Origin: Paraphysomonas bandaiensis
Taxonomy: Eukaryota; Protista; Chrysophyceae
Direction: 5' to 3'
NCBI GenBank assembly: GCA_965644295.1
Contig: CBFFRP010000476.1
Span: 1 to 23,202, forward strand
Length of the DNA stretch: 23,202 nt
Position 1 is the stretch's first letter. Each line of letters starts with the position of its first letter. The notes below the pieces were generated by a model. It was given only the letters and a program-made list of their open reading frames with translations. It was not told where the DNA came from and searched no databases. This document shows positions 3 to 23,173 of this stretch, in pieces. The position numbers and the translations under genes were made by a program.

Positions 3-2634
3 TTTGCCGATTTTTCAGACTGGGCTATCGTTATCTTTGATAATATGCTAATACTAGCCAACGATCCCCAGGATGCTTATGATAAGTTGGAACGAGTTAT
101 TGACAGATGTCTGGAGAGAAACATCAAGTTGAAAATGGCTAAGAGCTGGCTTGGTTTTAAGAAAGTTAATTTTTTCGGATATGTATGCAAACACAAATCG
201 TATGAAGTGTGTCCGGATAAAAAGGAAGCGTTGGCAAACATACCTATGCCAACATCGACTAAACAAGCTAGATCTCTGCTAGGCAAGGGAGTTTTCTTTT
301 CCAGCTTCACGCCAAAGTATTCTGACTTAGTAGGTCATCTAACAGACCTCACTAAGAAATCTTTCAATTGGAATAAATCTACTTGGCGTCATGATTATGA
401 AGCTGAGTACAAACGTTTATAAAAGGTTTACAAGATGCTTGTGAGCTCTTCTACCTTGATTATGAGTTAGAGTGGATTTTACGGACTGATGCAAGTGAGC
501 TAGGTATAGGTTCTGTACTACTACAACGGAAGATATTACCGTCAGGAGAAGCTCAATTGCAACCTATTGCCTTTTTATCTCTAAAAAGTTTTCAGAGCAA
601 GCAATGAAATGGGCTACTATAGAGCAGGAGGGCTATGGTATCTACTATTCGGTTAAACAGCTAGCGTATTACTTAGTTGGAAAGCAGTTTACAATAGAAA
701 CAGACCATAACAATTTGCTCTGGATGGAAGCGTCTGAGGTACCAAAAATTGTTAGATGGAGAATATTCTTGCAATCATTCAATTTTAAAATCCGACATAT
801 TTCGGGAGCACAGAATTGGTTAGCAGACTGGTTATCCAGGGAACACCAACTGGCTTATCTGTCGGGCATGTTCTTGGATGATTCGTGGGATGATGCCTAT
901 TTTCTGGGAGAGGACTGTCAGGATTCTGAGTATTTCTCATTCCTAGGAAATTTTATGGACCCGTCGGATCTCAGTGACCAAGAACAACCTTCCATGAATA
1001 TATCTCGTGAGGAATGCTTGCGTGAGGTACACAACTCTCGCGTGGGTCATCTTGGAGGGAAAGCTACTTGGATTCGTCTCAATAAACGTTTTCCAGGGCA
1101 TGGAATACCATATCAGGTGGTAGCAGAATATATATCCAACTGTCCAACTTGCGTAAAAACCCGGTTAGCCATGAAGGAAGCACTTATTCCCATAGTGCGC
1201 AACCTAAAACCACCGGGGGCTCGCAGTGCTATTGGAATTGATGCAGTGGAGATCACTCCACATGGCAAGGACGGTTACACTCATATCAATGTGATAGTGA
1301 ACCTTCACACAAAGCTCGTTTTTCTGGAACCAGTAAAAGGAGTAACGGCTTTGAATTTAGCGATTACTGTGTGGAAGTATTGGTCCTATTACGGTCACAC
1401 GGGTGTCGTGATTTCAGACCAGGGTCCGGATTTAACTTCGGATCTATTCCAACAGCTAACGGAATACATGGGAATGCGCCATACGTTCAGTATAGCCAAC
1501 CGGCATGCGAATGGCTCAGAACGCATCATAGGCGAGGTAGTTCGTCACCTACGCGCTCTAGTATATGATGCTAGCGAGCGTCAAGAGCGCAAGGATGTTT
1601 TTGAAGATCCTAGCTGGATCGCCAGTGTCCAACACATTCTTAACTCCGAAGTGTCATCTGAGACGGGATTCTCACCATTCGAGTTAACTTTTGGATCGGA
1701 GGACAAGCGTTATTTTAACGTGGACACCGACTCTGTTTCCCAGGATGCGCATGCGCGACTTAAACGTTTTAATGATAACCTTCGTGAGCTCAGGGCAGCT
1801 TCGCATGCTTATCAACAGCGTCTTGTGCAAGAGCGGGCTAGCCAAGGTATACCGGCCGACAAGCAGAACAGATATCAGCCGGGAGATCTTGTTTTGTTTG
1901 ACAAGGGTGCTAAAGTCCATCCTAAGATGTCTCACCGTTATATGGGTCCTTTCAAAGTCATATCTCAATACAAGAATGACATTGATTGCAGACATTTGGT
2001 GACAGGACAAGTTGTGAAAGTCGATGTGCGTGAGGTTAAACTTTTTGCGGGTGATCAAGACACAGCGTATAACATGGCTTGCAGAGACCATGAACAGCAT
2101 GTGATTGACACGATTCTATACTACAGAGGTGATAGAGACATCAGAACCTCTCTAGTTTTCACTGTGAAATTTCAGGATGGTGATGTTCGTGACATTCCAT
2201 TCAGTAACGATATTTTTGACTCTATTCCATACGCCGATTTCTGTTCTAGGAAAAGATATTTGTATCATCTTATTTATCCGGTTAAAGAGGCAAAGGAATA
2301 TATTACAAAAATCCGTAAGCAGCCCATTACTAGTTTTCAACCAGGTGATGAGGCTTATGTTGACTTAAGAGTTTTCGGGGACTTGTGGTATGAAAGCCTG
2401 AAGTTACCGGACTCTCATTTGATTACTTATGTTGCACGTTTTGTCTTCACACATTGGTATCACAAAAGTTCCAAACGGATACTCTCAACTAAAAATGTGA
2501 TGACTAAACAAACTTTCCGACTTGATAATTACCATATCCATTGTTTTGCCCATAAAGAATTTGATTCTTCTACAATGGTCTTGGTAGACGAGGAATTTGC
2601 CAGCAAATTTCCACAAGTTAATCAGTCGGTATAA
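3..2634 (+). pseudogene. pol: E1 pol (RT C-terminal half, RNase H, integrase, chromodomain-like, C-terminal extension) with two frameshifts
   Basis: WAIVIFDNMLI (RT), LRTDASELGIG / EQEG / TDHNNL / ADWLSR (RNase H), HNSRVGH...CPTC (IN zinc finger), IDAV / SDQG / NGSER (DDE), GPF motif. Frame breaks at ~417-419 (one T missing) and ~581-582 (extra CT). ORF 604-2634 is intact. Confidence 0.93.
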
Positions 2635-2636
2635 AG

Positions 2637-3183
2637 TGAGACGATCGGAGATGTGGGGGTCCTTGGCAGAGGGCTTTGCCTTGTTGATGCATCAGTTGGG
2701 TACCTTATGCTCATACCCGCGGATAACTTCTTACTACGTGCAATGACGTCTGATCTTACTAGGTGCCTGTTAGATGCTATTAAACAGACCCTTAAGCTCT
2801 GATAATCGTATAACTATCAATTATTAGAACTATCCTTACTTATGCTCTCATAACCTTAAAGAGTGACTCACATAGCAATCTTGCACTTACAAGCTGGCTC
2901 TACACTTAAGCACCCATATCATACTTATCACCATCGTATCTCTACAGTTATCGTAATGCTGTCCCTGTAGTCGTACTCATCTACTACTCATCGTACCTAT
3001 CTACTACTCATCGTACCTATCTACTACTCATCGTACCTCATACCCAATTACATACGTACTCACGTACCCAAGTACATATGCACACACATACCTCCACCCA
3101 ACAGCTACCCTACCACCGTATACTCACTGTAGTCAGGATACACTCACCCCACGATATATGGGACTACATGCGGATTTGTCACA
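2637..3183 (-). repeat. E2 3' LTR (547 bp)
   Basis: Direct repeat of 11775-12321; I counted 3 substitutions by eye. Contains a 20-bp tandem repeat at 2981-3038. Confidence 0.97.
2981..3038. repeat. Tandem repeat (CTACTACTCATCGTACCTAT) x ~3 within the E2 LTR; second copy at 12119-12176
   Basis: Directly visible 20-bp unit with no spacers. Confidence 0.9.
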
Positions 3184-3191
3184 TTTCCCCC
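3184..3191 (-). promoter_or_regulatory. E2 polypurine tract (short, GGGGGAAA)
   Basis: Purine run immediately 5' of the 3' LTR start (TGTGACA) on the minus strand. Confidence 0.75.
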
Positions 3192-3213
3192 GAATCTACG
3201 ACCTGACCAGGTC

Positions 3214-6200
3214 TTAAGCACTCTCGGGTTTCATATTCACTGCATGTACCCGGCCCTTCTTACCATAGAACTCGGCCTCATACAACACCGCATTAATCCT
3301 CTTCGTAACCACAAACGGTCCCTCAAACCGTGGCTGTAGCTTCATAGAAATTTTATACTTCTCCTTCTCCTTGGCCGAGGCAAATGTCCTGACTGGACAC
3401 CGTCTCCTATAGAATCGATCCCCCTCCTGATACTCCCGATAGCGTAGCTGTCTCACCTTGCCGCCGCCCGTCTTGTCACCAGTCGCCTCTCTCAGCTCAG
3501 CTGCATATGAGGTGATCCCCCTATTCATTCGGGCCCAGTTCTTCCTTGTTCTAGCTGTCACTGCAGTCCAGGCGGTCTCCAATGCCTCCACCAAGTTCAT
3601 AATCCAGTCCTCATCCCCATCTACCACCGCCTGCTTCTCCACCATCCTCTCATCAATGCCCACCATCTCTGGCGTTGATGCTTCCCGTCCAAACATCATA
3701 TACATGGGTGTATAACCTGTAGCGGCATTCACTGTCGAGTTATACAATAATTGGATCGTAGACAGATATACATCCCAATCCGAATGCTGTACATTCACAT
3801 AGTGATGCAATTGGTCCTTCAGTGTGGCGTTCATATTCTCCACCAACCCATTCGACCTTGGATTCTGGGGAGTTGTACACACTCTTGTAATCCTATACAG
3901 CTTACTGATCTGTTTATCTAATTTATTCGCAAACTCCCGTCCTCGATCGCTAATTAGCATCTGTGGTGCTCCAAACGCGTTGTATATCTGTGTGACTAAC
4001 ACGTGAGCTACTGTCTCCGCTCTCTTATCTGCAATTGGAAACATCCACACATATTTGGACTTAAAATCCTTACACACTAGTATATACTTATTTCCCCATG
4101 GCGTCTCAGGCAGCTCCCCCGTCAGATCAATATGTAGCCTGCCCATGGGTTGCTTAACCTCTGGATACTCCATTACTGGCACCTTTGGTCTACACCTGTA
4201 AGCTTTCCGCAGCTTGCACGCTATACATGAGCGACAATAATCGGTATGCTCCGCTCGTTGTCCCTCCCAGTGGTAATGCAACTTCATTGTCCCTACTGCT
4301 CGCGTGGCCCCTACGTGTCCAATGCCTTCATGGAAGATCCTCATACATGTGTCCTTCAACTCCCTAGGCACCACTCTCCTCCATATCTTGCGTTCCCCCA
4401 TCCTCAACTGATGGTGCAATACCAATGACTCCTCAATCTTAATCATCTTGTATATTCCCTCGTCCTTAACCTCTAACTCCTCGCCCTCCTGAATCTGTTC
4501 CATTAGTGACCGTAACCCTTCCTCCTTATACTGAGCATCCCTCCACTCTCGCCCACATACCGGCCATCTCTCAGACTCACTACTCCCTTCTACTCGATAC
4601 AAGTCCGTCAGCGCATACAAACCCATCGGTCCATATACTGGAAATGCTTCATCATCATATCTGTATGTCCTTCCCGTTAACGATCGCCGGTAACCCATCA
4701 CTGCTCTTGCTTCCTTGGAGTAAAATATGGATCTCACCTCATACAAATGCCCATTTTCATCATCCACAAATTTCCGGCCTACCAGGAACTGTAATTCCTC
4801 CGCTAGCTCCTCACACTGCAGTACATTATCATAAGCATAAATCTCAACGGCCTCTTCTCTCTCCTTGCGCTCCTTCCTTTTCATTCTCTGGCTTCTCCTC
4901 CGCCTTCCCGTTCCCTCCATCACTTCCTCAGGCCCTGCTATCTCGACGGACCCCTTGGCGTGGTCCTCCTCTCCTCCTTCTCTCATCTTCCGTTTCTCTT
5001 TCTTCTCCCATTCTCCCCTTACTCGTGCAGCTTGCTCTGGTTCCAACTTATCCAGCCTTTCCATCCAATAGTCATTCCCATATGAAACTAACACTTCCTC
5101 TCCCGGCAGTATCTCTGTAGTTGCTACCACGAACAGTCGCTTTCCCCTCATCACTATCTTGGCATTGACTAATGTATCATCCAGTGGATCGTTCGCGAAT
5201 CTTCCCCAACAGGATGTTGCCTCCTTCGCATCCACATATACCACCTCGCTCCCTCTCTTCTTAGCCGCGAACACATAATCCGTATCCTCTGATGCTCTCC
5301 TCTGTTCTGCTTCTTCCGCAGACCATCGCTCGCCATCATATTCACATATTATTCCATCTTCTCTTATCTCTTTTGTTGCGAAAAGGCCCCTGCCTGCTCC
5401 TCTCAACGTCGACGGCATGACAGTCACCCTATTGTACCCGGTGGCTTTCTTATCTCGCAGAGCCCATAAATCTCTATCCAATTCGACTTCCTTCCAGTCA
5501 TCCCTATGAGGCACCTCCCTTGCTGGTCTCATCTGCTGCTTTGGCTTCTCCCTCAGTGTCCGATCCGACCGTCCATATTTGCTCACATGTCTCCTCCTCT
5601 CTTCCTCTGTCATCTGAACTCCTTCCTGCCACCCTCTCACTACGTTAGCTCTCCTGATCTCTCTATTCTCTTGGGCCTGTTCCTTATACTGCTTCCTCAC
5701 CTCCTCTGCCTCCCTTACTTCTGCCCTTCGTTTCTCAGCGCGTGCTATCATCTTGGCTCTCTTCCTTTCCATGTCCTGTGCCAGCAAGATGTCCTCTTCC
5801 GTCACTACCCCTTTGTCCCACTCAAGGTCGTCAGCTGTCAAATATTGTGGCTCTTCTCCCTTTCTCAATAGCCTCGATACCGCATCTGCATCCATATGCT
5901 TTGTCCCTTGCTTATAATGGAGGTGGAAACTCATTCCCATCAGATCCAGCAGATATCTCATGAGCCTCCCATTATTAGACGCGGTCTGACCCTTATACAT
6001 ATATACTAATGCATTATGGTCCGTGTACACATCCACTTCATTTGCACATCGTAAGTACAGATCCCAGTACATCATACAGTCATGCAATGCTTTACACTCA
6101 ATCTCCGTCGGCGAATATTCCCTTTCCGTAGCATTCAAAATCTTGCTCCAATATGCTACTGGATGCCACTCCTCCTCATCATCCTGCTGAAGTAATATAG

Positions 6201-9039
6201 CTCCTATCCCTCGACCCTTCCGGCATGCGTCTACCCTCACCTGGAATGGCTTGGTATTGTCCACCAGACGCAAGCATGGATGAGCCATCAGTTCCTCTTT
6301 TAGTCTATCAACGGCTTCCTCGTGTTCCTCATTCCATGCCTCCGCTACGTTTACTCCTTTCCTTGTTAGGTCATGCAATGGTGCCACAATACTCGCATAG
6401 TCCTTGATGAAATGTCGGTAATATAAGGTCAGCCCTATAAACGCTCTTACAGCTGATACATCCTTCTTCGGATATTCCAATTCGTCTATGGCTTTGACCT
6501 TCTCTGGGTTGGGGTATTTCCCCTTTTCATCCACCATGAACCCCAAAAATGCCATGCTCGGGTAGTTCAGATGCACCTTCGTCACCTTGAACACCAAGTC
6601 CTTGCTCTCAAGTTGTTGGAACACCTTCCCTATGGATCCATAGTGCTCCCAGAACTCCCTCGAATGTACCATGACATCATCCTGATATACTAACGCCTCC
6701 TCCTGACTAATGCATTGGAATGTCTCCGCCACGATCCTTGCCCATTCGTTAGCACTGTTCCTTCCTCCTTGCACCATCCTTGTTGGCTGAAGGTACTCGT
6801 CATGTGTTCTATATGCAAACTTTGCTCTGCTCCCCTTCTCCAGGTCTACCACCCAAAACGCATCCTTGATATCCCCAACCGAGAAGTGCTTCGTTCCCTT
6901 TTTCACTTGGTCCAACAAATCATCAATCCTCGGCAATGGAAATACATCCGGTAACGTCTTTGCGTTCACTTCTCTGCAATCTATGGTTTGTCGGTAGAAG
7001 GTAGCCACCTCTTGCTCATTCCTCGGGTCCCACATAGCCTCCCTGGCATGCTCCCCCCATTTTTCCTTGAATTTTTCAATTCTATCCCTATATGGTATTA
7101 GTACCAACGCTGATGCCCACGCCCCTGGCTCCGCTGGTTCCACCTTTCGTTCTCTCTTCCCTATCCTCGCTTTTGCCTTCATGAATGCTTTCTCTACATC
7201 ATTGTACCTCCTCGGTCGACACAACACTGGTTTGTCATCCGTGGTTCTGATTCCTGTCTGATAATTTCTTAATTTTTTCGGGTTGTCGGGATCCGGATGC
7301 ACCAGCACATTCGCCCACGCTACACATCGAGCCAGTAAAATCGCTCGCTGGGTTGGTTGTCCATCTTTCACGCATATTCTCCACTTCCCTTCTCGCCCTC
7401 TAACCCTATTCTTCCACTCCTGTCTCTTCTTCTCCGCTACTGGGTCCTCATCCTCGCAACTTTCCTCCCCCAAATCTAGGACCTGACTAGGTCTCCATGG
7501 TGTCTCCACTGGATGATATCCCGCTCCCCCTGGATCCCATATCTCCGTTGACCATAGTAAGGTCATAGCTATATCGTCCCTGGCAATATCCAGATAGTCT
7601 ATGATTTCCCAGATTACGTCTGCGCGCCGCTCCTCCGGGTATTCCTCTCGGATTGCTACATAGTGCGCTTGATCGTCTGGACTCATCCAGTGCCATAGAG
7701 CCGTCCACGGATGCTTGAATTCTGGCGGACATTCAGTGGATTGTGGAGTCGCTTCTACTACTCGCGTGGTGTGTGCCCGTACCTCTTCCTGGTCCTCTTG
7801 CTCATCCAGATCCTCATTCGTATATCGCGGCATCTGATATACCGGCTGTATTTCGACGCTGATTGCCGACCGATGTAACTTAACGGGCTCGGATGACCAA
7901 TTTTCCACCCACACCCCATGAGTTCCTGTGCAGGACGTCACGTCCGGAATACGTACTACCTCTCTCCACTTCCCCGCTATGATCCCTTTCGGCACATCCT
8001 GTCTGACTACCGTTACGATCGACGACGCGAGAGGTGAAGTCTCCATCTTGTGAACTGGTACAAATTGGACTGAATTTGCAGGGATGGTGGCTCGCTGTAG
8101 ACACGCTCTGTGTGCTCTCCGTACTCCATTGGCCCGACGAACCCCCTCCATAAACTGATATATCCTGGCCTCCTGAATAGGACTTCTTTGTTTTCCAATC
8201 CACTCACATGACCCCGCGTATGACCGTCCACTCATCACCACCTCAATACCTGACTCCGTGGTGGTAACCACGAACGCTCGATGTTTCTTAAGCTCAATTG
8301 CATCCGATCCTCCCCACAGTGCTGAGATCGTCAGCCCTGGTACTAGATCAAACCTTCTCTCCCATATCCCTTTGACCGGCGGTCCGGTTTGCAACCGTCC
8401 ATGCATTTCCCCATAATATTGTACGCCTTCCACCTCCATTCTCAAGGTGGTATATGAAGTGACCTCCTCTGGCTGACCATCACCCCCTGTAGCTCCCATA
8501 ATACGATAACGTTGATGCTGTGGTAACACTGTGATTGGCAAGCCCATCTCCTTAGCCAACCCTTCATGCATAAACTTCCAATCAGATCCTGGATCCACAT
8601 GTAATACCATAGGCATCCGATTTCCCTCGACTTGGGCAACCCCACACCACATGGTCAGAGAGTCTGGCTTCCCATTCATTCCTGCCTCTGTTACCGATGT
8701 ATGAGCTAGGCTGACCCTAACTGGTTTGTCCTCCTGCCCCTGCCCTCTCTCTTCCCCGTCCTCCTCGTACCAGTCCTCATCCCACTCCTCTTCCGCTTCA
8801 GACATCTCTACCCTGGCGTGATTCATTCTGACAAACGCTTGCAAATTCTTCTCCTTCTGGCGCGAGACTTCGGCATGGAAAGCTTTCTTCTCCTCCTCTG
8901 TGAATGTACTCCATGCTGACCGAGACTCCTCCATTTTCCTCTTACAATTTCTTGGTACGCCCGAATTTCGAACCGCGTGAATTTCTCTGGTTGATACCCC
9001 TTCCACTTGCCAGATGTATCCCTCAATCTGTAGAAGCAC
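3214..9039 (-). CDS. pol: E2 Pol polyprotein: protease, dUTPase-like fold, RT, RNase H, SET, integrase
   Basis: LHVDPGS (PR); FPLPRIDDLL, GDIKDAF, VYQDD (RT); RVDAC, EIEC, YTDHNAL, ADAVSR (RH); HEGIGH...CIAC, HIDL, SDRG, NGLVE (IN); EGPF. The frame is uninterrupted. The true N-terminus probably comes from gag near 8945, so the ORF-track start is nominal. Confidence 0.96.
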   Translation of the reverse strand: MLLQIEGYIWQVEGVSTREIHAVRNSGVPRNCKRKMEESRSAWSTFTEEEKKAFHAEVSRQKEKNLQAFVRMNHARVEMSEAEEEWDEDWYEEDGEERGQGQEDKPVRVSLAHTSVTEAGMNGKPDSLTMWCGVAQVEGNRMPMVLHVDPGSDWKFMHEGLAKEMGLPITVLPQHQRYRIMGATGGDGQPEEVTSYTTLRMEVEGVQYYGEMHGRLQTGPPVKGIWERRFDLVPGLTISALWGGSDAIELKKHRAFVVTTTESGIEVVMSGRSYAGSCEWIGKQRSPIQEARIYQFMEGVRRANGVRRAHRACLQRATIPANSVQFVPVHKMETSPLASSIVTVVRQDVPKGIIAGKWREVVRIPDVTSCTGTHGVWVENWSSEPVKLHRSAISVEIQPVYQMPRYTNEDLDEQEDQEEVRAHTTRVVEATPQSTECPPEFKHPWTALWHWMSPDDQAHYVAIREEYPEERRADVIWEIIDYLDIARDDIAMTLLWSTEIWDPGGAGYHPVETPWRPSQVLDLGEESCEDEDPVAEKKRQEWKNRVRGREGKWRICVKDGQPTQRAILLARCVAWANVLVHPDPDNPKKLRNYQTGIRTTDDKPVLCRPRRYNDVEKAFMKAKARIGKRERKVEPAEPGAWASALVLIPYRDRIEKFKEKWGEHAREAMWDPRNEQEVATFYRQTIDCREVNAKTLPDVFPLPRIDDLLDQVKKGTKHFSVGDIKDAFWVVDLEKGSRAKFAYRTHDEYLQPTRMVQGGRNSANEWARIVAETFQCISQEEALVYQDDVMVHSREFWEHYGSIGKVFQQLESKDLVFKVTKVHLNYPSMAFLGFMVDEKGKYPNPEKVKAIDELEYPKKDVSAVRAFIGLTLYYRHFIKDYASIVAPLHDLTRKGVNVAEAWNEEHEEAVDRLKEELMAHPCLRLVDNTKPFQVRVDACRKGRGIGAILLQQDDEEEWHPVAYWSKILNATEREYSPTEIECKALHDCMMYWDLYLRCANEVDVYTDHNALVYMYKGQTASNNGRLMRYLLDLMGMSFHLHYKQGTKHMDADAVSRLLRKGEEPQYLTADDLEWDKGVVTEEDILLAQDMERKRAKMIARAEKRRAEVREAEEVRKQYKEQAQENREIRRANVVRGWQEGVQMTEEERRRHVSKYGRSDRTLREKPKQQMRPAREVPHRDDWKEVELDRDLWALRDKKATGYNRVTVMPSTLRGAGRGLFATKEIREDGIICEYDGERWSAEEAEQRRASEDTDYVFAAKKRGSEVVYVDAKEATSCWGRFANDPLDDTLVNAKIVMRGKRLFVVATTEILPGEEVLVSYGNDYWMERLDKLEPEQAARVRGEWEKKEKRKMREGGEEDHAKGSVEIAGPEEVMEGTGRRRRSQRMKRKERKEREEAVEIYAYDNVLQCEELAEELQFLVGRKFVDDENGHLYEVRSIFYSKEARAVMGYRRSLTGRTYRYDDEAFPVYGPMGLYALTDLYRVEGSSESERWPVCGREWRDAQYKEEGLRSLMEQIQEGEELEVKDEGIYKMIKIEESLVLHHQLRMGERKIWRRVVPRELKDTCMRIFHEGIGHVGATRAVGTMKLHYHWEGQRAEHTDYCRSCIACKLRKAYRCRPKVPVMEYPEVKQPMGRLHIDLTGELPETPWGNKYILVCKDFKSKYVWMFPIADKRAETVAHVLVTQIYNAFGAPQMLISDRGREFANKLDKQISKLYRITRVCTTPQNPRSNGLVENMNATLKDQLHHYVNVQHSDWDVYLSTIQLLYNSTVNAATGYTPMYMMFGREASTPEMVGIDERMVEKQAVVDGDEDWIMNLVEALETAWTAVTARTRKNWARMNRGITSYAAELREATGDKTGGGKVRQLRYREYQEGDRFYRRRCPVRTFASAKEKEKYKISMKLQPRFEGPFVVTKRINAVLYEAEFYGKKGRVHAVNMKPESA
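5065..5430 (-). other. SET domain (lysine methyltransferase fold) within E2 Pol
   Basis: GAGRGLFATKEI (GxG motif I), ICEYDGE (motif II), DYVF...VDA, WGRFAND (motif III, H replaced by D), ATTEILPGEEVLVSYGNDYW (motif IV with conserved Tyr). Confidence 0.92.
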
Positions 9040-11852
9040 TCTCCCCGCTTGGAATGCTCAAATCCACACCAGTTGCACAGCACCCACCCATTTTTCCCTC
9101 GTGGTGCCGTGTAGCCTCCTCCGCTCCCGGTGCCTGTCTCTCTCCTCCCTTCAGGCTTATCCGTCTCTGCCCCCTGATCTCTTTCTCCTCCTTCCTGGTA
9201 AGCACCATGTGCCTTTACTGTCTTCTTGTGCGATCCGGTGACTCCTGGTATCTGTCCATTGGGATATGTATCCATCAGCTTCCCAACCACTTTCTGCACA
9301 CAATTCACAATATACTCCTCGCTCTTCATGTCCACCAGGCCTATCCTCCTATCCATCTCGATCTCTGCATCAACTCCTTGTCTCACCAAATTCCCTAATG
9401 GCCGTCCTGCGGTCTTCATCCTAAATCGTCTGTACAGTTGCTCCGCTCTATTGTCGTCGTCCCACCTGTATGATCTTGTGTCTTAATTCTGCAGAAGCTT
9501 TCGTCGAACTTCTCTAACGATGTTTCGTCCATCTGGAATTCTTCCACTTCTCTCTGCAGCACCTCCTTCCCTACTTGTATGCCGAAAATGGACGTGAACC
9601 TAATCATAAACTTAAACACCTCCACTCCCCACGTCACCACATCGGTCTCCACCGCTGAACAGGTCGACTTGAAACCACGCTCTCCATGCTGTACTCTCGT
9701 AGCATATTTCCTTCCCAACTCCCCTTTAAACGGAGCCCCCGTCATCAGGTGTAGACATAACTTCATTGGCGACCACTGAGCCATGTGGGCCGTAGATACT
9801 ATTCCACTGAATATCATAATACAGTCTAACCCTGAGGTGCTCCTGTGGGAAAGTCTACTTGGGGATATCCAATGTGGGCAGCTGGCTTTCCCGACTGTAC
9901 CCAGTGCGACATGGGTAACTTCCTCAAGTGTTCTCTCATGTTCCGGCAATACTTTGTGCCATCTCCACCTGCTCCTCACACCTCTGCTGCAGCTCCGCAG
10001 TGATCTTCTCCACCACCCCTGGCGTCCTCATGCACCATTGACAGAACTCCCCATAGCTCTTAGACCTCGCCTTCTCCACCTGCTGACTAGGGTCGTCCTC
10101 TTCCTTGGCCTCTGCTTCCCTCCCCCTTCTCATGCTAGTGCGAGCCTCTTCCTCTCTTCCTGTCATACTCTCTTTCTCTACGGTCAACCAAGTCTCCTCA
10201 TCGCTGCTCACCTCGTCTGGATACTTTTCTCCCCATCGATCCATATTCGGTCTTCCTTCCCCTCTCATCCACCTAACCTGATCTCTATAGCTTTTCAGAG
10301 GCGGTCCTATCTCCCTGAGCTCTCTCAATGCTACCTGAATGACCTCCTTCTGCTCCTCCAGATACATCAACCTCTCTGCCAACCTATTGCTGGTCGTGAG
10401 ATAGTCCAGCAGCTCCGGTATCTTGTCCCTCTCCTGGCTCAGTAACTCGAAATCCATGTCTCGGCGCCCCCTAGTCCTTGCATGTTGGATGATCCCCAGC
10501 CACGACACATAGAACTCTCTTTGTATATCTGGTACTCCCTCCTTCACTGCAGCCATCTTCAGCTCCTCCATCAATCTATCCAATACCCCCCTGTACGTGC
10601 CTTCCGTCATCCTCTCTCTCACATTCTGTATCTCTCTCCTCACCAGCCTCTCACTCTGCCATACATACTTGTCTTGATGTTCTGGTTCCACCGGCTTCAC
10701 CAGATGTAGCAGCATATTCCTCTGAAGCATGTTCCGGGTCTCCTGTGATAGTCCCACGGGTTTCGAGGCTGCCTGAATGTCCTCCTGCATCCATCCTCCA
10801 TCTCGTCTGCTCTCCTCCTCATCTGTTCTCCGTCTACCCCTGGACCTACTTCCCATACTCCACTCATCCTGTGACAACATCTCCTCCCCTCGTCTTCTTC
10901 TCCCGCCCCCTACTCCCATCGCAGCCAACTCCTCCATCACTGGTGTACTTCGATACTCTTCCCCTATCTCCCTTCTGGCTGGTGTCTTTGGATAGTCGTC
11001 CCCTCTTTCTCCTCTATGAGACTGCCAATGCTCTGCTCCTGTGGCCTCCCTCCTACTCGTCGGTGTCTGCCCCTCTTCCCTCATTATCTTCCCTTCTCTC
11101 CGACCTCCTCTATACCAGCATACCCAACACTGTGTAGCATACTTCGGCGCTGATCCTGCCTTCAGTACTGCCTGGCAGCTCCTACACTTACGATCAAATA
11201 TGAGAGTCTCTGTCCGTGGATTCCCTCTCATCTCTATCACAGGCTGATCTCTTGCTTTCTCTGTCGCATACTTCTGACGCACCCACACCCATGATGGAAT
11301 ATCTGCAGGCCTGCTCTCCCTCTCTTCCTGCTCCAATTCCCCTAGCCGCATCTTCTCACTAAACAATTTCCTGGTGGTTTCCATACCCCTCGCTCCGGTC
11401 TCTCTCGCTCGTACAGGCCTTCCTGTTAGTGGGTCTCCCTCGTCTGACTCTTGATAGTCTGGAGCCCCACTCCAATCTCTGTACAGTCTCTCCATTGTGG
11501 CCCCCATCCCTGGCCTGCCCTTGTTGCTGTGTCTACTCCCGTCCCCACGGTTGTAGACTGGTTCCTCCAATGGGGCCGTCCCTTGGCCGGTCCCGGTATC
11601 CCCCCATGCCTCGGAGAGTGATGTGTCCCGTGCACTGTCCACATCGTCCTCCCATTGCTCTGCCCTTCGCTCTTCCCCCCTTTGGGATCGTTGCCATGAA
11701 ATTCCGCTGCCCCCTCGTCTTCGTGGCTGATCAAGTCCACTGGTTCGCGAGGGCAGCCCACGTTGTCCACCACATGAGACGATCGGAGATGTGGGGGTCC
11801 TTGGCAGAGGGCTTTGCCTTGTTGATGCATCAGTTGGGTACCTTATGCTCAT
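8823..11852 (-). pseudogene. gag: E2 gag, split over three ORFs (9936-11852, 9416-9979, 8823-9419)
   Basis: Lies between the 5' LTR and pol. Capsid-like WGVEVFKFMIRFTSIFG...LQREVEEFQMDETSLEKF in the middle ORF, zinc knuckle CNWCGFEHSKRGEC at 9036-9077. Frame changes near 9950, 9480 and 8945. Confidence 0.8.
11757..11772 (-). promoter_or_regulatory. E2 primer-binding site, probably tRNA-Ala
   Basis: TGGTGGACAACGTGGG starts 2 nt after the 5' LTR. Its complement ...GUUGUCC-A-CCA has U70, C71, C72, A73, as in tRNA-Ala (G3:U70 identity pair). Confidence 0.8.
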
Positions 11853-12321
11853 ACCCGCGGATAACTTCTTACTACGTGCAATGACGTCTGATCTTACTAG
11901 GTGCCTGTTAGATGCTATTAAACAGACCCTTAAGCTCTGATAATCGTATAACTATCAATTATTAGAACTATCCTTACTTATGCTCTCATAACCTTAAAGA
12001 GTGACTCACATAGCAATCTTGCACTTACAAGCTGGCTCTACACTTAAACACCCATATCATACTTATCACCATCGTATCTCTACAGTTATCGTAATGCTGT
12101 CCCTGTAGTCGTACTCCTCTACTACTCATCGTACCTATCTACTACTCATCGTACCTATCTACTACTCATCGTACCTCATACCCAATTACATACGTACTCA
12201 CGTACTCAAGTACATATGCACACACATACCTCCACCCAACAGCTACCCTACCACCGTATACTCACTGTAGTCAGGATACACTCACCCCACGATATATGGG
12301 ACTACATGCGGATTTGTCACA
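11775..12321 (-). repeat. E2 5' LTR (547 bp)
   Basis: Direct repeat of 2637-3183, followed on the minus strand by the PBS. Confidence 0.97.
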
Positions 12322-12480
12322 AAAGTGTTCCTACTCTACAATTTACGATGTGAAATTTTTAAGTATTCTCCGAATTACATCTATAATATGATAATAATAC
12401 TCCATGGTGGTTCGTTTTGATGGCTATTTCGAAACTAGTCCCATTGACATGTGTGCGACCATGGATTTCTCACAAAAAAC

Positions 12481-13799: not shown

Positions 13800-14208
13800 A
13801 ACGTTTTAAAAAGATTTTAAGTGCACGCCAGCGGGCTGCTACACTGTTGAGCTCACCAGCGGGTGATGCTCCTCAACTCTGACGCAAACCGCGAAAGAAT
13901 TTAAATAAATCGTTATTTAAAACGTGTAATAGAAAAGTGAGTAACATGCTATATACAACTCTACAGTATTAACACACACATACAACATCATGTTCAGCAT
14001 TATTTCACTTCAGCACACAACACACCAGATCAGAAGTATTTTATCCGGTACGTATGTACAGCTTCAACACTCCGTGTATACACTGAAAGAGTAGAAACTG
14101 AATATGTCACTGTGATGTTTCTGAGAACTAGAAACACGTGAATGACAGAAAGCTCTCTCTAAAAACGTTTTAACAGATTTAGAGTGTACGCCAGCGGGCT
14201 GCTACACT
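13800..14208. repeat. Dispersed ~45-bp direct repeat (13800-13845 and 14164-14208)
   Basis: AACGTTTTAA..AGATTT..AGTG.ACGCCAGCGGGCTGCTACACT is present twice. Confidence 0.85.
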
Positions 14209-15400: not shown

Positions 15401-15489
15401 ACACTGTTAAGCCTACCAGCGGGTAGAACTCCTCCACACAAACGCAAACCGCGAATGAGCTTAATTGAATCGTTATTAAAACGTTATAT
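15401..15489 (-). repeat. E5 3' LTR, fragment between the E4 and E3 insertions
   Basis: Homologous to 13841-~13928, and joins 22891 onward once E3 and its ATAT TSD are removed. Confidence 0.8.
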
Positions 15490-16328
15490 TGTGACCAAAC
15501 CCGGGGTATCACACCGGGTGCAGCTATGTATATGAAATGAATGTGCGAATGTAACAAGAAAATAGCTAATGTAGAGATAAATGTGCTTATTACTCTGCCC
15601 TGCAACTGCCTGAGCACCCTCAAGCACTTATCTGAAGACACCTCCTCAAACGTGTTAATAGGCAAGGCTAGTAACATAATAATGACAGCACATAGAACAC
15701 AAACAACTCATACAGAACCATTTACATTCTATGAACTATCTAGAAACACAGCAGAGAACAAAGAACAATATTCTGCAGAAAATTCAGCAACATTTCGCCA
15801 ATTTTGTGGAGATATCCACCTTCTGGAAGATTCACGTAGAAGCCTATAGGAAGAGCCTTAAACCAACTCAACAGCCACAGACCAAAAATGCAGTGACTAG
15901 CCAATCAGCGTTCAGCAGTAATACATAATACAGCAGCTGTATAGTGATAGTCCCTACATGTACCTATAACTGCATCATCGCGTACTTATGTACCTCGTGT
16001 CACACAACACACTCTGCAAACACATCACCACCAAGTACAGTCCGCATTCCAGCACCGTTATACAGCATTCGAAGCATATACATATAGACAACACAGCCTG
16101 TATTCCATACAGTATACAAAACAGTATAACCCGAGTACACCAATCAGATCTCTCCATTGCTCATACAGCAAAAACAGCAGCACTTGTAATCCGAGAGTGA
16201 AGTGTGTCTTCATCCGAAGAAGATAAGATGCAGGCAGTACATACACACACAGTCCTCTAGAGCCCCCCTTGTAGCATATTAACCTGGTCTTTTGTGGTAT
16301 GTGATTAGTTTGACGCCTCGGCGTTACA
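15490..16328 (-). repeat. E3 3' LTR (839 bp)
   Basis: Direct repeat of 22052-22890; I found one substitution by eye (CCAACT vs CCAGCT). Confidence 0.97.
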
Positions 16329-16349
16329 CTGCCCCCTCCCCCTCTCTCT
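16329..16349 (-). promoter_or_regulatory. E3 polypurine tract
   Basis: AGAGAGAGGGGGAGGGGG-CAG immediately before the 3' LTR start (TGTAAC). Confidence 0.92.
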
Positions 16350-16355
16350 GTTATG

Positions 16356-19300
16356 CTATTCAACTATGCGGGGATACCTTTTGGCTATGTCTGCATCCAC
16401 CAGCACCATGTAAGTCTCATCGAAGGTCTTGACGGAGCCCCACGCAAACACAAGATAATTATCGAGGGCGTAAGTAGCACCATTAAGCAGAAAACGAGCA
16501 CTAATCTTCTTTTTAGATGTCCTGTGGTACCAATGTGTGTATTCGAAGACCACCACATACGATTTTGTAGAAAAGTCTGGAAGGTCCAAGCTCTGATACC
16601 ACTGATCCCCAAAGAAACGAAGATCCACATACACTCTATCACCTACTTGCACTGCTGTGACATCTGCCCTCCTGAGCTGAGTCTTGAAAGGAGTGACCTG
16701 ATTCTGATCCAGGATGAGGTGATGTAAGTACTTCCTAGATTTACAGAAATCTTCATATGCCTGACAATCGAATAGATCTCTACTCCATGGTACTTCCAGT
16801 ATGTCCCCATCTGCATACTCCACAATGAATGTCATGCTAGTACGGTGGTTGGCATCTCCCTTGTACCCATGAATCACCTTGACTCTGAATTGCTCTTGAT
16901 CTCGGATGGCAGCCTCCACGGCATCCTCCTTTGAACCCACAAAGTACTCTAGGTCAGTTACAGAATATTTGTGAATAGCCCCTGTTAATACATTTCTGCA
17001 GTCTACGTCATTCTTGTACTGGTGAACTACCTCGAAAGGTCCCTTGCGTTTTGTAGACAGCTTCGGCACCGGTCTCACTCCTGGGTCATACAAGACCAGA
17101 TCCCCTTTCTGGAATTTGTTCTGGGGACCCATCCTCTGGTTAGGATCCTCCACTCTCTTCTTGATCAGAGTCTCCTGGTATTGTCTAGATGCGTTGCGCA
17201 ACTGGTGAAGGTTCTCGTGCATCTTCTGGAGGTATAGGTGCTCAGGGACGCGCTCGAATTTCTTCGCGAGATCACTATAGATGGAGTCTGGTGTCCCAAA
17301 AGTCAGCTCAAATGGAGTATAGTTTGTCTCTGCTGATCTGTGTGTGTTAAGAATAATTTGAACACTGGGGATGAAGGTTGGGTCGTCAAAAACATTCTTC
17401 TCTCTGGTGTCATATACCAATGCTCGCAAGTGTCGTCCCACTTCCTTATTCACCCGCTCGCAACCATTGACATGTTTGTTCGCAATGCTGAAAACATGCC
17501 GAACTCCCACCAGATCAGTCAATTCCTTGAATAACGCTGAATTTAAATCTGGTCCCAAATCAGATATGATCATGTCAGTAAAACCGAAATTCGCCCAATA
17601 CTTCCAGACTGAATCCGCCAGGGTCGTTGCTGAGCATCCTTTCACTGGGTTCAAAAACGCTAGCTCCGTAAACAAATTCACAATGACGTTAATGTGTGTC
17701 TCTCCATTGCGGCCGTGGGGTGTAATGGCTAATGCATCTATACCGATTGCGGTCCTGTGTGATGGAGGTTTCAAGTGTCTCTGCACAGGGATCAGCCGGG
17801 TTTTCATCATCTCCCTCCTGGACTTCTGGCAATTTGCGCAGCGGTCTATATAGTCCTTAACTTGTCGCTGGGATATGCCATGCCCAGGGAAATCCCTGTT
17901 CAGTCTCCTCCAGGTCTCGCGCTCTCCCCAGTGTCCGACTTGTCAATGGGCATTGTGAACCTGATCTAAACACTCCGTTGGTGTGAGCTGCAAATGGTTA
18001 GAGGTGGGTTTGATCTCCTCTCCTAGCACCTCTTCCTCATCAAACATATTGCATAAGGTACTCATGCGCTGCTCATATTCTAACTCCTCCTCCTCAAATT
18101 CGTCATCTTCATTACACAGGTGGCATAGCCCTTCCGCTGTATGACAATCTTCATGCTCGTCCTCTTCAGCAACACATAGATGGAGTCTGGAGAGTGTATC
18201 GGCCAGTACATTTTCTTTTCCAGGGATATGTCTCACCTTAAACACAAATGACTGCAGGTAAATTCTCCATCGTATAATCTTGGGTACTTCTGACGCTTCT
18301 ATCCATCTCAGGTTGTTATGATCCGTCTCCAACAAAAACTCCTTCCCGATTAGATAATACGCCAGTCTCTTGACCACATAGTAGATTGCAAACCCCTCCT
18401 GCTCAATAGTATCCCACTTCTGTGCTTGCTTAGAGAATCTTTTGGAGATCAGCGCTATAATTTGCTCCTCCTTTGAACCGTCTGCATGTGTCAAGATTTG
18501 AATGAGGACTCCGCCAACACCTATCTCACTCGCATCAGTTCTTATCACCCATGGCAGCTCGTAATCTGGGTAATGAAGTGCACATGCCTCTTGCAAATCC
18601 TTCTTGAAATCTTCGAATTCCTGTCTATAGTCGTGCTCCCACTTTGACTCGTCTGACCAGTCGAATTCAGGTTTCGTAAGATCTGTCAAATGTCTAACTT
18701 TCTCACTGTAATTTTTCACAAAAGGTGCGAAGAAAACTCCACATCCTAATAATGATCTGATTTTCTTGGATCTGTTCCCGGATTCTGGAAAAGGTATCTC
18801 AAGTAATGCAGCCTTTCTGTCCTCTGTCAACTCAAAGCTCTGGTGCTTGCATCTATAGCCAAAGAACTTGACTTCTCCAAAACCTAGCCAGCTCTTTGCA
18901 AACTTGAGAACAACATTGTGTTGTATGCATCTCTCGATGAAGATTTTCAGTCTCTCGTATGCCTCTTGGTAATCCATCGCCAGAAGCAAAATGTTGTCGA
19001 ATATCACTATGGCCCACGGTAAGTCTGAAAACAATGCATTGACAGTCTCTTGTAAAACGCCAGTAGCAGGACCTATTCCCTCAGGCATGAATCGTGGTTG
19101 ATATTGACCCCAAGGAGTTTGAATGGATAGCTTCTCCGCCGTCTCTTCATGTAATGGGATTTGGTGGAAGGCATTTGTGAGATCTATGTCTAAAAATACC
19201 TTGTACCCCATGATACGATCCAACTGGTGCCTAATATTAGGTATAGTGTAGTTACCGATGTGAATATGCTTGTTGATCTCTACGTAATCACCACAGAACC

Positions 19301-20342
19301 TGATGAATGGCTTCGTAGCCTTGGGAGCAACAACCAAGCAAGACGCCCATGGTGATCTACTCTTCTCGTACATGTATCCGCGCAGTCTCAAAAATTCCTT
19401 TTCTGCCGCCTCCCAGAGTCTTGGGTTTATGGGTCTGGCTTTTGGTTTGATTCGCTGAGGTAAAGTGTCTTTGAAGGTGAGTTTTAATGGTTCAACACCT
19501 CTGATGCCAGTCCATGTCTCTGGTACAAAAACTTTCAAACCTTCATTTAGTAACAGTTCTCGAACAGGTGTTGCTTTGTCAAAATCTTCAGCTATATGCT
19601 CGGGCATCAAATCCTTGAATTCCTGAATGGCTTCTTCTCTGCTTTTTCCCAAAAACTTGATCACCTCACCAAACTGCACTGGCAACGGAGACATTTCTTC
19701 TTCCGGTGGCTTTCCCTCCATACTATTTGACCAGGGATGGACTATGTTGTCCATGGATGCCAAGAACTGCAACATCTCCTCCTCCGCATCTGCCACGCTC
19801 GTTTTAATCTTTCTTTCTGAATTGCCTTTTAAACTATAGCAAAAGAAGTCCCACAAGTCCCCTAGTATCGCAGGTAACCCAATTATGACCTCATTATCTT
19901 TCATGTCCAACACAATAAAATCTCCAGAGTATTTGCATGAAACCGCGCGCAGTGAACGATCCTCGAACTTCAAGGTAAGTCTCACCATGATGTCACTCCA
20001 TGCCACTGTCTTATTGTCTGCTAATCCGACTTTTGTTCTCTTGTGTATTATGTCCTTAGTATGCATGTGTTTCTCGATATCTCTAAACTTCCTTATGCTG
20101 ATGTAGTTCGAACAGAGGGCTCCCGTGTCGAACAGTACTGATGTCTCTACGTCTCTTCTCATTTCCATATTCTCTCTATCTACTACTTCAATCCTCGCTT
20201 TAGTGTGTGCGGCAGTCCATAGTCTCCTGCCTATGCCGCACGCCTGCAGGAAACTTCGCTCCAGGGCCTTTCTGCAAGCCTTCCTGCTGTGTGAGCTTAT
20301 TATTTCACTGACAACAGGGGGCCCAGAAAGACCCTGCAGTAG
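16356..20342 (-). CDS. pol: E3 Pol (PR, RT, RNase H, integrase, chromodomain-like, C-terminal extension); one in-frame TGA at 17943-17945
   Basis: LFDTGA (PR); DIDLTNAFHQI, MPEG, VIFDN (RT); RTDAS, EQEG, TDHNNL, ADTLSR (RH); HNAH*QVGH...CANC, IDAL, SDLG, NGCER, KGPF (IN). ORFs 17943-20168 and 16356-17810 are in one frame, which is open from the gag stop. Confidence 0.93.
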
Positions 20343-20345
20343 TCA
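20262..20345 (-). promoter_or_regulatory. Candidate gag-pol stop-codon readthrough signal (UGA-CUA plus 3' stem-loop)
   Basis: TCT TGA CTA CTG, then CAGGGTCTTTCTG (20336-20324) pairing with CAGAAAGGCCCTG (20274-20262): 13 bp including one G:U, 49-nt loop. Confidence 0.75.
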
Positions 20346-21938: not shown

Positions 21939-22051
21939 GTTAACGAATCCTCAGTATTGTGTAATAATAGATATTATATATATATATATATTTTTTTTTA
22001 TATCAATTCCAAATCTGCAGATTCGTTCGCTGCTTTCGGAAGTAAATTTAC

Positions 22052-22890: not shown

Positions 22891-23173
22891 ATATAGAGAA
22901 GAAGAATGAGTAACACAGCTATACATCTCTACAGTGTATAACACACACATACACATACATCATGTTCAGCATTTCACTTCAACACACAACACACCCGATT
23001 AAAAGTATTTTATCCGGTATGTATGTACAGCTTCAACACTCTGAGAGTAGAAACTGAAAATAAAACTGAAAACTGAAAATACTAAAACACTCTGTACGTG
23101 TTAGAGAGTACAACAGAAGAGTAACATATCATACTACTAATATAACGCAGTAAGTAACCAGTACTGCGTGACA
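22891..23173 (-). repeat. E5 3' LTR, start
   Basis: The minus strand begins TGTCACG at 23173 directly after a PPT. 22895-23060 is homologous to ~13930-14103. Confidence 0.8.

Follow-up and report, generated by a model that had tools for sequence, protein, structure and literature searches.

A Ty3/gypsy retrotransposon of Paraphysomonas bandaiensis with a conserved SET domain between RNase H and integrase

The window analysed here is a stretch of 23,202 nucleotides of Paraphysomonas bandaiensis (contig CBFFRP010000476.1), and its minus strand carries a Ty3/gypsy LTR retrotransposon of 9,685 bp (2637–12321). The 5′ LTR (11775–12321, minus) and the 3′ LTR (2637–3183, minus) are both 547 bp long with TG..CA ends, and their alignment gives 3 mismatches in 547 sites, the number that had been estimated in an earlier sequence-only reading of this DNA. 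About 10 more copies of the LTR are found elsewhere in the genome. The element is flanked by a 4-nt target-site duplication, AAAG, at 12322–12325 on the 5′-LTR side and at 2633–2636 on the 3′-LTR side, and at seven empty sites, in paralogues of the host element, the two flanks overlap by exactly these four nucleotides. An 18-nt primer-binding site (11755–11772, minus), 2 nt from the LTR, is complementary to the 3′ end of tRNA-Ala(AGC) plus CCA, and a tRNA-Ala gene was located by ARAGORN in the same genome. A polypurine tract (…GGGGGAAA; 3184–3196, minus), read from the sequence, abuts the 3′ LTR. The element thus has the TG..CA LTRs, target duplication, tRNA primer site, polypurine tract and RT-RNase H-integrase order of a Ty3/gypsy element. 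Because of the 4-bp duplication, the empty sites, the tRNA-Ala primer site and the near-identical LTRs, it is a young, genuinely transposed Ty3/gypsy LTR retrotransposon. Its insertion target is another retrotransposon, within a repeat-rich contig, and across many studies 17 public runs hold the element in near-identical form, none of them recorded as RNA.

The Pol open reading frame (3214–9039, minus; 1,941 amino acids plus stop) is uninterrupted, and its domains follow the order (PR)-RT-RNase H-linker-SET-linker-small barrel-integrase, all on the minus strand. A possible, weak aspartic protease region (8488–8631) has an HVDPGSD motif and a gag-asp_proteas match below the cut-off (E 0.088). 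It is followed by the reverse transcriptase (RVT_1, 6535–6996, Pol aa 682–835; Pfam E 1.5e-15) with its YQDD motif at 6676–6687, and by RNase H (RT_RNaseH / RT_RNaseH_2, 5938–6336, aa 902–1034; Pfam E 3e-27). In the translation, the end of the RNase H region and a charged coiled-coil linker occupy 5443–5937, a segment that aligns with the N-terminus of a SET-less relative, P0037. They lie ahead of the SET domain (5035–5442, Pol aa 1200–1335), which is supported by Pfam, PDB sequence matches, AF2/Foldseek and dN/dS. Downstream lie a charged, fast-evolving linker (4846–5034; pLDDT <50), a conserved small SH3-like beta-barrel, X1 (4585–4845; 29-sequence alignment and AF2 model), and X2, modelled by AF2 as two helices and a four-strand sheet (4372–4560). 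X2 precedes and is continuous with the Integrase_H2C2 zinc finger (4201–4371, aa 1557–1613; Pfam E 3.1e-9), and is presumably the usual N-terminal segment of a gypsy integrase. The catalytic core rve (3859–4152, aa 1630–1727; Pfam E 2.4e-12) and a weak match to a Tf2-1-like integrase C-terminal SH3 domain (3271–3354; Pfam 22.9 bits, cut-off 30) complete Pol. No Chromo match is found in this Pol by Pfam-A. An antisense ORF at 4506–5120 (plus) is unsupported as a gene and lies opposite the strongly purine-skewed coding strand.

The sequence-only reading had placed a complete, in-frame SET domain at 5065–5430, between RNase H and integrase in an uninterrupted Pol and flanked by charged linkers. 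The Pfam domain order agrees with this placement, the 1,941-aa minus-strand ORF holds all four SET motifs, and the linkers on both sides are charged in the translation and helical and of low confidence in the AF2 model. Two points can be added: the domain lies on the minus strand, the plus-strand translation being senseless, and SET is also followed by the X1 barrel.

A gag-like open frame (9939–11754, minus) corresponds colinearly to the gag portion of the gag-pol of a sister copy, C463. It matches no Pfam family, and no family passes the threshold when gag and the N-terminus of Pol are scanned leniently against Pfam. The gag/pol junction (8942–9957, minus), aligned with the sister copies C339 and C463, contains seven small frame-changing indels (at 9957, 9940, 9844, 9835, 9493, 9460 and 8942), none of which is found in either sister, and the gag-pol of C463 is a single open frame of 2,252 aa. 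Therefore, gag and pol are out of frame in the window copy, which may be unable to express Pol alone. Two of the bases (near 8939–8942) are also absent from contigs of four public runs. The frame breaks are described as they stand in the sequence. With its near-identical LTRs and open Pol the element looks intact and young, apart from this broken gag/pol junction.

The SET gypsy family has few copies, most of them on short contigs: the window copy, its only full-length member found, and three large partial ones. The in-frame SET architecture is also found in the independent copies C661, C339 and C463. A search for other RH-SET-IN copies and families, which the sequence-only reading had proposed, recovers three gypsy families in the genome, in all of which the RH-SET-barrel-IN block is colinear, and more outside it. 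Among the young families, the C210 family has at least 8 near-identical open frames of 1,526 aa. Among the proteins from other sources, seven (P0002, P0003, P0011, P0012, P0014, P0015 and P0018) have the same colinear block, one of them from Amoebophrya sp. AT5.2. A different SET-bearing gypsy, P0007, has a chromodomain, and where LINEs of this genome carry SET, it adjoins the endonuclease rather than an integrase. The SET-less relative P0037 aligns to Pol 1031–1115 and 1399–1938 and has the barrel and integrase without SET, so that SET is a discrete cassette. Pairwise SET identity tracks that of RT, RH and IN (Spearman 0.44–0.58), and in a quick, weakly resolved tree the gypsy RH-SET-IN domains fall on one side of a branch with support 89. 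These sequence comparisons indicate that SET and the other parts of Pol have diverged together in several gypsy families, here and in other marine protists.

It is also evident that SET is conserved at the protein level. The dN/dS of SET is 0.057 against copy C661 (14 synonymous and 3 non-synonymous changes) and 0.031 against copy C339; against C661, the ratio is 0.059 in integrase, 0 in RT and 0.33 in the post-SET linker. The X1 barrel has a dN/dS of 0.023, and the region before SET (5443–5937) shows 0.02–0.04 within the family. Between families, the dN of SET is about that of RT and integrase, the linkers evolve about twice as fast, and the post-SET linker shares 26–30% identity. The variants in other strains' contigs, from four runs, are mostly at third codon positions. 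These results indicate that purifying selection constrains SET to the same degree as RT and integrase, and the insert, as the sequence-only reading had anticipated for a functional domain, is retained under selection (dN/dS 0.03–0.06) across family copies.

These data bear on whether SET could be a passenger or an artefact, that is, an exon of the host caught in a single dead copy, a chimera of the assembly or a decaying, functionless relic. The frame-broken gag/pol junction of the window copy, and a family of few copies mostly on short contigs, would fit such a reading. Against it stand the same architecture in C661, C339 and C463, in two other gypsy families and in proteins from other samples and organisms, the low dN/dS of SET, the recurrence of the element in public runs, and the empty sites, which prove transposition. 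An assembly chimera or a host exon is ruled out by the many copies, families and sources, and the passenger or artefact reading as a whole is highly improbable and close to refuted.

In the Pfam-A scan of the Pol ORF, SET (PF00856) reaches an E of 1.7e-13 with 51.3 bits (cut-off 22.4), and the match covers the full model (1–105 of 105) at Pol aa 1216–1321, with its core at 5077–5394 of the window. PRDM2_PR (PF21549) matches the same residues with 31.5 bits (cut-off 27). Motif I, GAGRGLFA (5377–5400, minus; aa 1214–1221), motif II, EYDGE (5329–5343, minus; aa 1233–1237), and motif IV, GEEVLVSYGNDYW (5065–5103, minus; aa 1313–1325), have the expected form, and Tyr1320 within GEEVLVSYGNDYW is aligned with the Tyr of the GFDYG of G9a. 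Motif III, RFANDP (5185–5202, minus; aa 1280–1285), departs from R-F-x-N-H-(S/C): its Asn is kept and its His is replaced by Asp. SET therefore retains the glycines of the SAM pocket, the tyrosine of YxG, the motif III Asn and the motif IV tyrosine. No Cys-rich pre-SET or post-SET cluster is found on either side of SET in the translation, and similarity to G9a is confined to the SET core.

The PDB sequences that phmmer matches to SET include G9a (1e-6), SET8 (1.5e-5), vSET (1n3j, 1.4e-3) and LegAS4 (5czy, 2.7e-3). With a subfamily profile, the matches are to EZH2 (7e-15), KMT2C/D (4e-14), PRDM9 (4e-13), SETD8 (6e-13) and G9a (1e-12), and LegAS4 scores alike with EZH2, KMT2, PRDM9, SET8 and G9a. 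The AF2 model has a pLDDT of ~70–80 over SET, and Foldseek matches it to PRDM9, MLL1, SETD8 and PRDM5 with probability 1.0, E ~2e-8 and TM up to 0.75 by target. Both the profile search and the structural comparison proposed in the sequence-only reading therefore return SET. That reading had also likened the compact C-terminal end, YGxxYW, to viral and bacterial SETs, which agrees with the 1n3j match and with the nearest Atlas clusters, small SETs of giant viruses (Nucleocytoviricota) and Bacteroidota. Judged by its sequence and its predicted structure, the region is a bona fide SET-fold and SET-profile member.

The ND in place of NH in motif III, which had been noted from the letters alone, is confirmed by alignments, in which the Pol SET has ND versus NH in G9a and EZH2. 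It is no peculiarity of the window copy, since ND is found in 135 of the 169 aligned homologous domains. ND is hence a signature, that of a large subfamily of compact SETs, and not decay, and the idea that it marks a dead domain is ruled out by its being the norm in the subfamily. In 32 diverse subfamily members D1284, Y1234, G1236, E1315, Y1320 and W1325 are invariant and G1216 is almost so. The ND-type signature reads G-R-F/Y-x-N-D ... G-E-E-x(4)-Y-G-x-x-Y-W. Public data contain more than 1,700 homologues of the subfamily at E ≤ 1e-3. In a word-indexed protein search, SET alone returned two fragments and the profile returned 75 small SET proteins, some of which are complete transcripts of marine protists. 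ND-type SETs also occur in LINE, Copia and chromo-gypsy elements, as small stand-alone genes, and in fusion with PRMT5 and DOT1; in one related protein, P0045, SET is paired with deubiquitinase-like domains. A possibly viral contig of 26.6 kb, made up of small genes without annotation, carries one stand-alone ND-type SET. An IMG/VR related-locus search with single proteins gave nothing useful on viral origin. The ND-type subfamily appears to be uncharacterised so far, and its SETs may have unusual cofactor or substrate chemistry.

The X1 barrel next to SET is well modelled by AF2 (pLDDT 87) and belongs to the integrase N-terminus of the SET gypsy clade. Foldseek against the PDB finds nothing below E 0.3 for X1, with a SAWADEE, Tudor or PAZ flavour only. 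In VIA-align against 48,161 chains no Z exceeds 5.7 (CAP-Gly, VapX, chromo barrel, Tudor), a value typical of any generic SH3-like barrel, and Atlas searches by features and by shape return no named family. As these fold searches are non-specific, a role of X1 as a methyl-lysine reader is only a lead from its predicted fold.

The substitution in motif III and the neighbouring barrel raise the possibility that SET is a catalytically silent binder of a histone tail or of some other partner with a lysine, which together with the barrel would tether the integrase complex to chromatin and thereby select target sites, much as chromodomains select target sites in chromoviruses. The Asp at the His position counts against catalysis, and the His of the NH motif is reportedly needed for the activity of SUV39H1 (Rea et al. 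2000). The replacement runs throughout the subfamily, SET adjoins a barrel of SH3/Tudor/chromo-barrel type directly upstream of integrase, the window copy sits inside another retrotransposon in a repeat-rich contig, and purifying selection would fit binding as well as catalysis. However, the GxG glycines, the YxG tyrosine, the motif III Asn and the motif IV Tyr stay invariant across diverse members, and a pure binder would have no need of residues for SAM binding and transfer. Moreover, PRDM9, the best structural match, is an active enzyme without a classical NH, and the partners found in fusions with ND-type SETs, PRMT5 and DOT1, are methyltransferases of active type. We regard a silent binder as rather unlikely, if deserving of weight.

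We lean instead, by a modest degree and on the strength of sequence, towards SET being an active lysine methyltransferase delivered with integrase and most likely acting on chromatin. SET would work as a SAM-dependent protein-lysine methyltransferase and would reach the nucleus together with integrase or as a piece of it. Carriage with integrase is the most likely route because SET lies directly upstream of the barrel and P0037 has the barrel and integrase without SET; the physical linkage of SET and integrase is one that we infer purely from domain order. There, SET would act at the integration site or close to it, methylating histone tails or else other proteins of the chromatin or of the element, and such methylation could determine which chromatin state the new copy takes on, either as host-sparing self-silencing or as protection from host silencing. 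As SET is kept in Pol, the element lineage probably supplies a chromatin-type enzyme of its own together with integrase. The link to chromatin comes from the PRMT5 and DOT1 fusions of ND-type SETs and from the host H3, which is canonical and multicopy with the usual K4, K9, K27 and K36. A complex prediction of SET with the host H3 tail (residues 2–46) and SAM gave a median score of 0.02, with one of the three runs at 0.49, values that count neither for nor against such a complex.

The substrate could also lie outside the nucleosome. An active SET might methylate integrase, Gag, RT or host restriction or silencing factors, which would promote replication or evade defence. Many SET enzymes, such as SET7/9, SMYD, SETD6 and Rubisco LSMT, have non-histone substrates, and no histone-specific family stands out among EZH2, KMT2, PRDM9, SET8, G9a and LegAS4, which score alike. 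In the LINEs, SET is beside the endonuclease, so that the partner shared by all these SETs is perhaps something other than the integration machinery, and P0045 couples SET to deubiquitinase-like domains. On the other hand, the closest solved relatives are all histone methyltransferases, the fusion partners PRMT5 and DOT1 are histone enzymes and the host histones are canonical, and we consider non-histone substrates decidedly unlikely.

A broader extension of the chromatin-directed methyltransferase reading is that SET, barrel and integrase form one protein that methylates the target nucleosome, with the barrel perhaps reading the mark, and that ND-type SETs were captured separately at least three times; this full version is, in our estimate, unlikely. 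With such an integrase-coupled writer, the element would set its own epigenetic state at birth, and ND-type SETs would come from a stock common to giant viruses and protist hosts, on which the gypsy, Copia/chromo-gypsy and LINE elements of marine protists drew. If this is true, capture of a histone writer is a recurrent strategy of transposons.

Transposons are commonly viewed as targets of host histone methylation. To our knowledge, the chromatin domains that they have captured fall into two groups, readers (chromodomain, MBD, PHD) and DNA methyltransferases. A long-kept domain of histone-methyltransferase type, found here in three element classes (gypsy, Copia and LINE) of marine protists, suggests that elements may write protein or chromatin marks as they integrate. 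Its capture bears on the first heterochromatin on new insertions, on the choice or preparation of target sites, and on the exchange of chromatin enzymes among genetic parasites, giant viruses and hosts. SET is not a standard component of Ty3/gypsy Pol, as the sequence-only reading had held: two other gypsy elements in the window are without it, and it is absent from the accessory domains listed in a review. The tally of chromatin-transposon gene fusions by Grau-Bove et al. 2022 (10.1101/2021.11.30.470311) lists SET after PHD, Chromo and SNF2_N, with SETMAR, in which a DNA transposase has been joined to a host gene, as an example. Its main text gives this aggregate count and SETMAR without an RH-SET-IN gypsy, the ND subfamily, selection or element anatomy, and beyond this tally, taken from the main text, we found no SET inside a gypsy Pol described in the literature.

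Among compact SETs, PBCV-1 vSET (A612L; 1n3j) and Legionella LegAS4 target host histones. Like them, the Pol SET is a minimal domain of ~120–135 aa without Cys-rich pre- or post-SET, ends in E-E-x-x-x-S-Y-G-x-x-Y-W and is carried by a genetic parasite; vSET and LegAS4, in contrast, are separate proteins with a classical NH, whereas the Pol SET is embedded and ND, and its identity to vSET is limited to the C-terminal motif. With the PR/SET proteins (PRDM9, 4c1q), its best structural match, it shares the lack of a classical NH, but the zinc-finger array and the KRAB/SSXRD context are absent from Pol. It is no PRDM orthologue, because the subfamily profile scores EZH2 and KMT2 equal to or above PRDM9. 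Unlike the SUV39/G9a class, it is flanked by charged linkers instead of zinc clusters. Among retrotransposons, chromoviruses have a chromodomain on their integrase (Gao et al. 2008, cited by 10.1101/2021.11.30.470311), DNMT-bearing elements are known in dinoflagellates and charophytes (PMC5890265), and MBD-bearing Copia elements in arthropods (PMC6673714). As in these elements, a domain of host-chromatin type resides in the LTR polyprotein of the SET gypsy, is under selection and has spread with the lineage. The SET gypsy differs from them in that its domain is a writer of lysine-methyltransferase type, unlike the chromodomain and MBD readers and the DNMT, and in that it lies between RNase H and integrase, whereas the chromodomain of chromoviruses is at the integrase C-terminus.

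The element that carries the SET domain lies at window positions 2637-12321 on the minus strand and is bounded by two 547-bp direct repeats with TG..CA ends (LTRs, 2637-3183 and 11775-12321), which differ at 3 positions, as the sequence-only reading had estimated. Two bases separate the 5′ LTR from an 18-base primer site that matches, at every position, the CCA-tailed 3′ end of a tRNA-Ala(AGC) whose gene is located elsewhere in the same genome. A polypurine tract ending in GGGGGAAA adjoins the 3′ LTR, and an AAAG target duplication brackets the element. Seven further copies of the host element, the gypsy element into which it inserted, are empty at this site: their two flanks join directly and share precisely the four AAAG bases. 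The SET-bearing element is a real, recently moved retrotransposon. The host element itself (1-2636 and 12322 to ~13970) has an RNase H-integrase open frame without SET (604-2634, plus strand); the genome contains 12 or more other near-identical copies of it, among them the seven empty sites.

Pol is an uninterrupted open frame of 1,941 aa (3214-9039, minus strand), in which Pfam-A identifies RVT_1 (aa 682-835, E = 1.5e-15), RNase H (902-1034, 3e-27), SET (PF00856, 1216-1321, 1.7e-13), the integrase zinc finger (1557-1613, 3.1e-9), the integrase core (1630-1727, 2.4e-12) and a weak Tf2-type SH3 match (1896-1923). The proposed placement of SET between RNase H and integrase thus holds, and the four SET motifs quoted from sequence alone are all present in frame. 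Its locus, 5065-5430, makes no sense when translated on the plus strand, but the feature is correct within the minus-strand frame. The plus strand has a GC skew of -0.28 to -0.44 and an AT skew down to -0.33 over 3000-12000, and the purine-rich coding strand probably accounts for spurious antisense ORFs such as that at 4506-5120 (+).

It is evident that the Pol SET domain is genuine. The profile match suggested as a check covers the whole Pfam model at 51.3 bits (cut-off 22.4), and the AlphaFold model, built from an alignment of eight homologues (SET pLDDT ~70-80), retrieves PRDM9, MLL1, SETD8 and PRDM5 in Foldseek with probability 1.0 and E ~2e-8. Among PDB sequences, phmmer matches G9a/EHMT2 (1e-6) and SET8/KMT5A (1.5e-5), and also EZH2, PRDM9 and LegAS4. 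No Cys-rich pre-SET or post-SET region flanks the domain in the translation. A profile of 32 diverse members of the ND-type subfamily, compact SETs with Asn-Asp at motif III, matches EZH2 at 7e-15 and KMT2C/D, PRDM9, SETD8, G9a and LegAS4 at a similar level. Given these about equal matches, the Pol SET is a separate branch of the SET superfamily rather than an orthologue of any one histone enzyme.

The window holds the sole full-length copy found in the 62.5-Mb assembly, where fragments and solo LTRs are also present. The copies on contigs C339 and C463 (98% identity each) are cut inside SET by the contig end, and that on C661 (96%) has a frameshift, an in-frame stop and a truncation. The element is near-identical in 17 public runs from many studies, marine metagenomes included. 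The window copy differs from C339 and C463 by seven small indels that change the frame, all between 8942 and 9957; contigs of four runs lack the bases at one of them too. Gag and pol form one open frame of 2,252 aa in C463 and are separated by one in-frame stop in C339; they are out of register in the window copy, which alone may therefore be unable to express its Pol.

Nei-Gojobori dN/dS between copies, the comparison that the sequence-only reading had proposed, is far from 1 for SET: 0.057 for the window versus C661 (14 synonymous and 3 non-synonymous changes) and 0.031 versus C339. In the C661 comparison the values are 0.059 for integrase, 0 for RT, 0.023 for the barrel X1 and 0.33 for the charged linker after SET. 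Between families, dN for SET (0.41, 0.60) is similar to the values for RT (0.28, 0.55) and integrase (0.23, 0.48), and the linkers reach 0.8-1.0. Variants in other strains' contigs are mostly at third codon positions. That SET is a passenger or an artefact is, in the light of these values, highly improbable.

The ND at motif III, already pointed out as unusual, is borne out by alignment with G9a and EZH2, in which Asp1284 of Pol aligns to the His of the classical NH. ND is present in 135, and NH in only 4, of 169 SET homologues drawn from the P. bandaiensis genome and from 1.84 billion representative proteins that were searched; a lesion of the window copy is ruled out by this distribution. 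In the 32 diverse members, Asp1284, Tyr1234, Gly1236, Glu1315, Tyr1320 and Trp1325 are invariant and Asn1283 and Gly1216 nearly so, giving a signature of roughly G-R-F/Y-x-N-D ... G-E-E-x(4)-Y-G-x-x-Y-W. SUV39H1 activity requires the motif III His; PRDM9, the best structural match of the Pol SET, is active without a classical NH. A catalytically silent domain that binds histone tails as a tether for target choice is rather unlikely. That the positions of the cofactor pocket and of catalysis are strictly conserved favours an active enzyme whose pocket is a variant form.

SET is followed by a charged linker and a conserved block, modelled from a 29-sequence alignment (pLDDT 87), in which X1 (Pol aa ~1399-1485) is a small beta-barrel and X2 is a helix-plus-sheet segment continuous with the integrase zinc finger. 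X1 resembles only generic SH3-like barrels in VIA (CAP-Gly Z 5.7, chromo barrels 4.2-4.6, Tudor 4.2), with no significant match by Foldseek or in Atlas. The related Pol fragment P0037 aligns to Pol 1031-1115, the RNase H end, and, at 43% identity, to 1399-1938, from X1 onwards, with no SET between the two blocks. By this arrangement, X1 belongs to the integrase N-terminus in this gypsy clade and SET is a discrete cassette upstream of it.

A six-frame search of the genome gave 78 SET matches, the majority within open frames of 1,000-3,700 aa. A search for further families had been proposed in the sequence-only reading: Pfam finds RH-SET-IN in the C654 gypsy family (SET identity 51%) and the C210 family (37%; 8 or more copies, each open over 1,526 aa) of this genome. 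Three of its LINE families (C132, C143, C644) have the order SET-endonuclease-RT; in these giant LINE frames (2,256 to >3,299 aa; L028-L030) an ND-type SET immediately precedes the APE endonuclease and RT. Beyond this genome, the RH-SET-barrel-IN block recurs in metagenome proteins and Amoebophrya sp. AT5.2, and SET is also present in a Copia-type Pol and in a gypsy Pol with a chromodomain. In three metagenome proteins of ~2,500 aa (P0004, P0014, P0016), a gypsy-type RT-RH-SET-barrel-IN Pol is preceded by an APE-like domain (Exo_endo_phos); a chimeric element, or gene models that were merged, may account for this. In a quick, weakly resolved tree, barrel-type gypsy SETs are set apart by a branch with support 89, LINE SETs form their own clade (99), and Copia and chromo-gypsy SETs lie elsewhere (93), an indication of three or more lineages associated with transposons. 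Across the barrel-type gypsies, identity in SET rises and falls with that in RT, RH and IN, the pattern to be expected if SET was captured once, long ago, and has since diverged together with the rest of Pol.

ND-type SETs also occur fused to PRMT5 and DOT1, beside a deubiquitinase-like domain, as small complete transcripts of marine protists and as a stand-alone 135-aa gene on the 26.6-kb contig L031 (Logan SRR14194075), which has densely packed small unannotated genes and a pectate-lyase-like protein and looks like a virus or phage. The non-transposon proteins P0084, P0099 and P0067 include two PRMT5 fusions, one of them also with DOT1, and one 4,152-aa protein with five tandem SET domains. 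Both other gypsy elements within the window lack SET. A second young LTR retrotransposon (15487-22890, minus strand; 842-bp LTRs at 15487-16328 and 22049-22890, 2 mismatches), likewise without SET, encodes RT-RNase H in one open frame and integrase in another, and its gag has a weak CCCH zinc-finger match. A 103-nt direct repeat pair (13970-14072 and 22939-23041, 84% identity) lies outside both LTR elements.

The SET domain is structurally sound, under selection, conserved at cofactor and catalytic positions, and directly upstream of the integrase N-terminal barrel. The reading we lean towards, with some reserve, is that it acts as a lysine methyltransferase, which would travel together with integrase, methylate histone tails or proteins associated with them, at the new insertion or close to it, and thereby influence the chromatin state of the new copy. 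The host genome has canonical histones; an active enzyme with non-histone substrates is decidedly unlikely.

In the literature searched, neither a gypsy element with SET placed between its RNase H and integrase nor the ND-type subfamily is described. In the available portions of Grau-Bove et al. (10.1101/2021.11.30.470311), "SET methyltransferases" are counted among chromatin-transposon fusion gene models, and SETMAR is the only SET fusion named in the text. SET is not among the captured domains listed in a review (PMC6338049), which, like the SET-less gypsies of the window, agrees with the view that it is no standard Ty3/gypsy component. The suggested resemblance to vSET is seen on the C-terminal motif, where phmmer against PDB sequences gives 1.4e-3. 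The SET-bearing gypsy is classed as a case of a known kind, the capture of accessory chromatin domains by retrotransposons; the published captures are of chromodomains, DNMTs and MBDs (PMC5890265, PMC6673714), whereas the domain in this element is SET.
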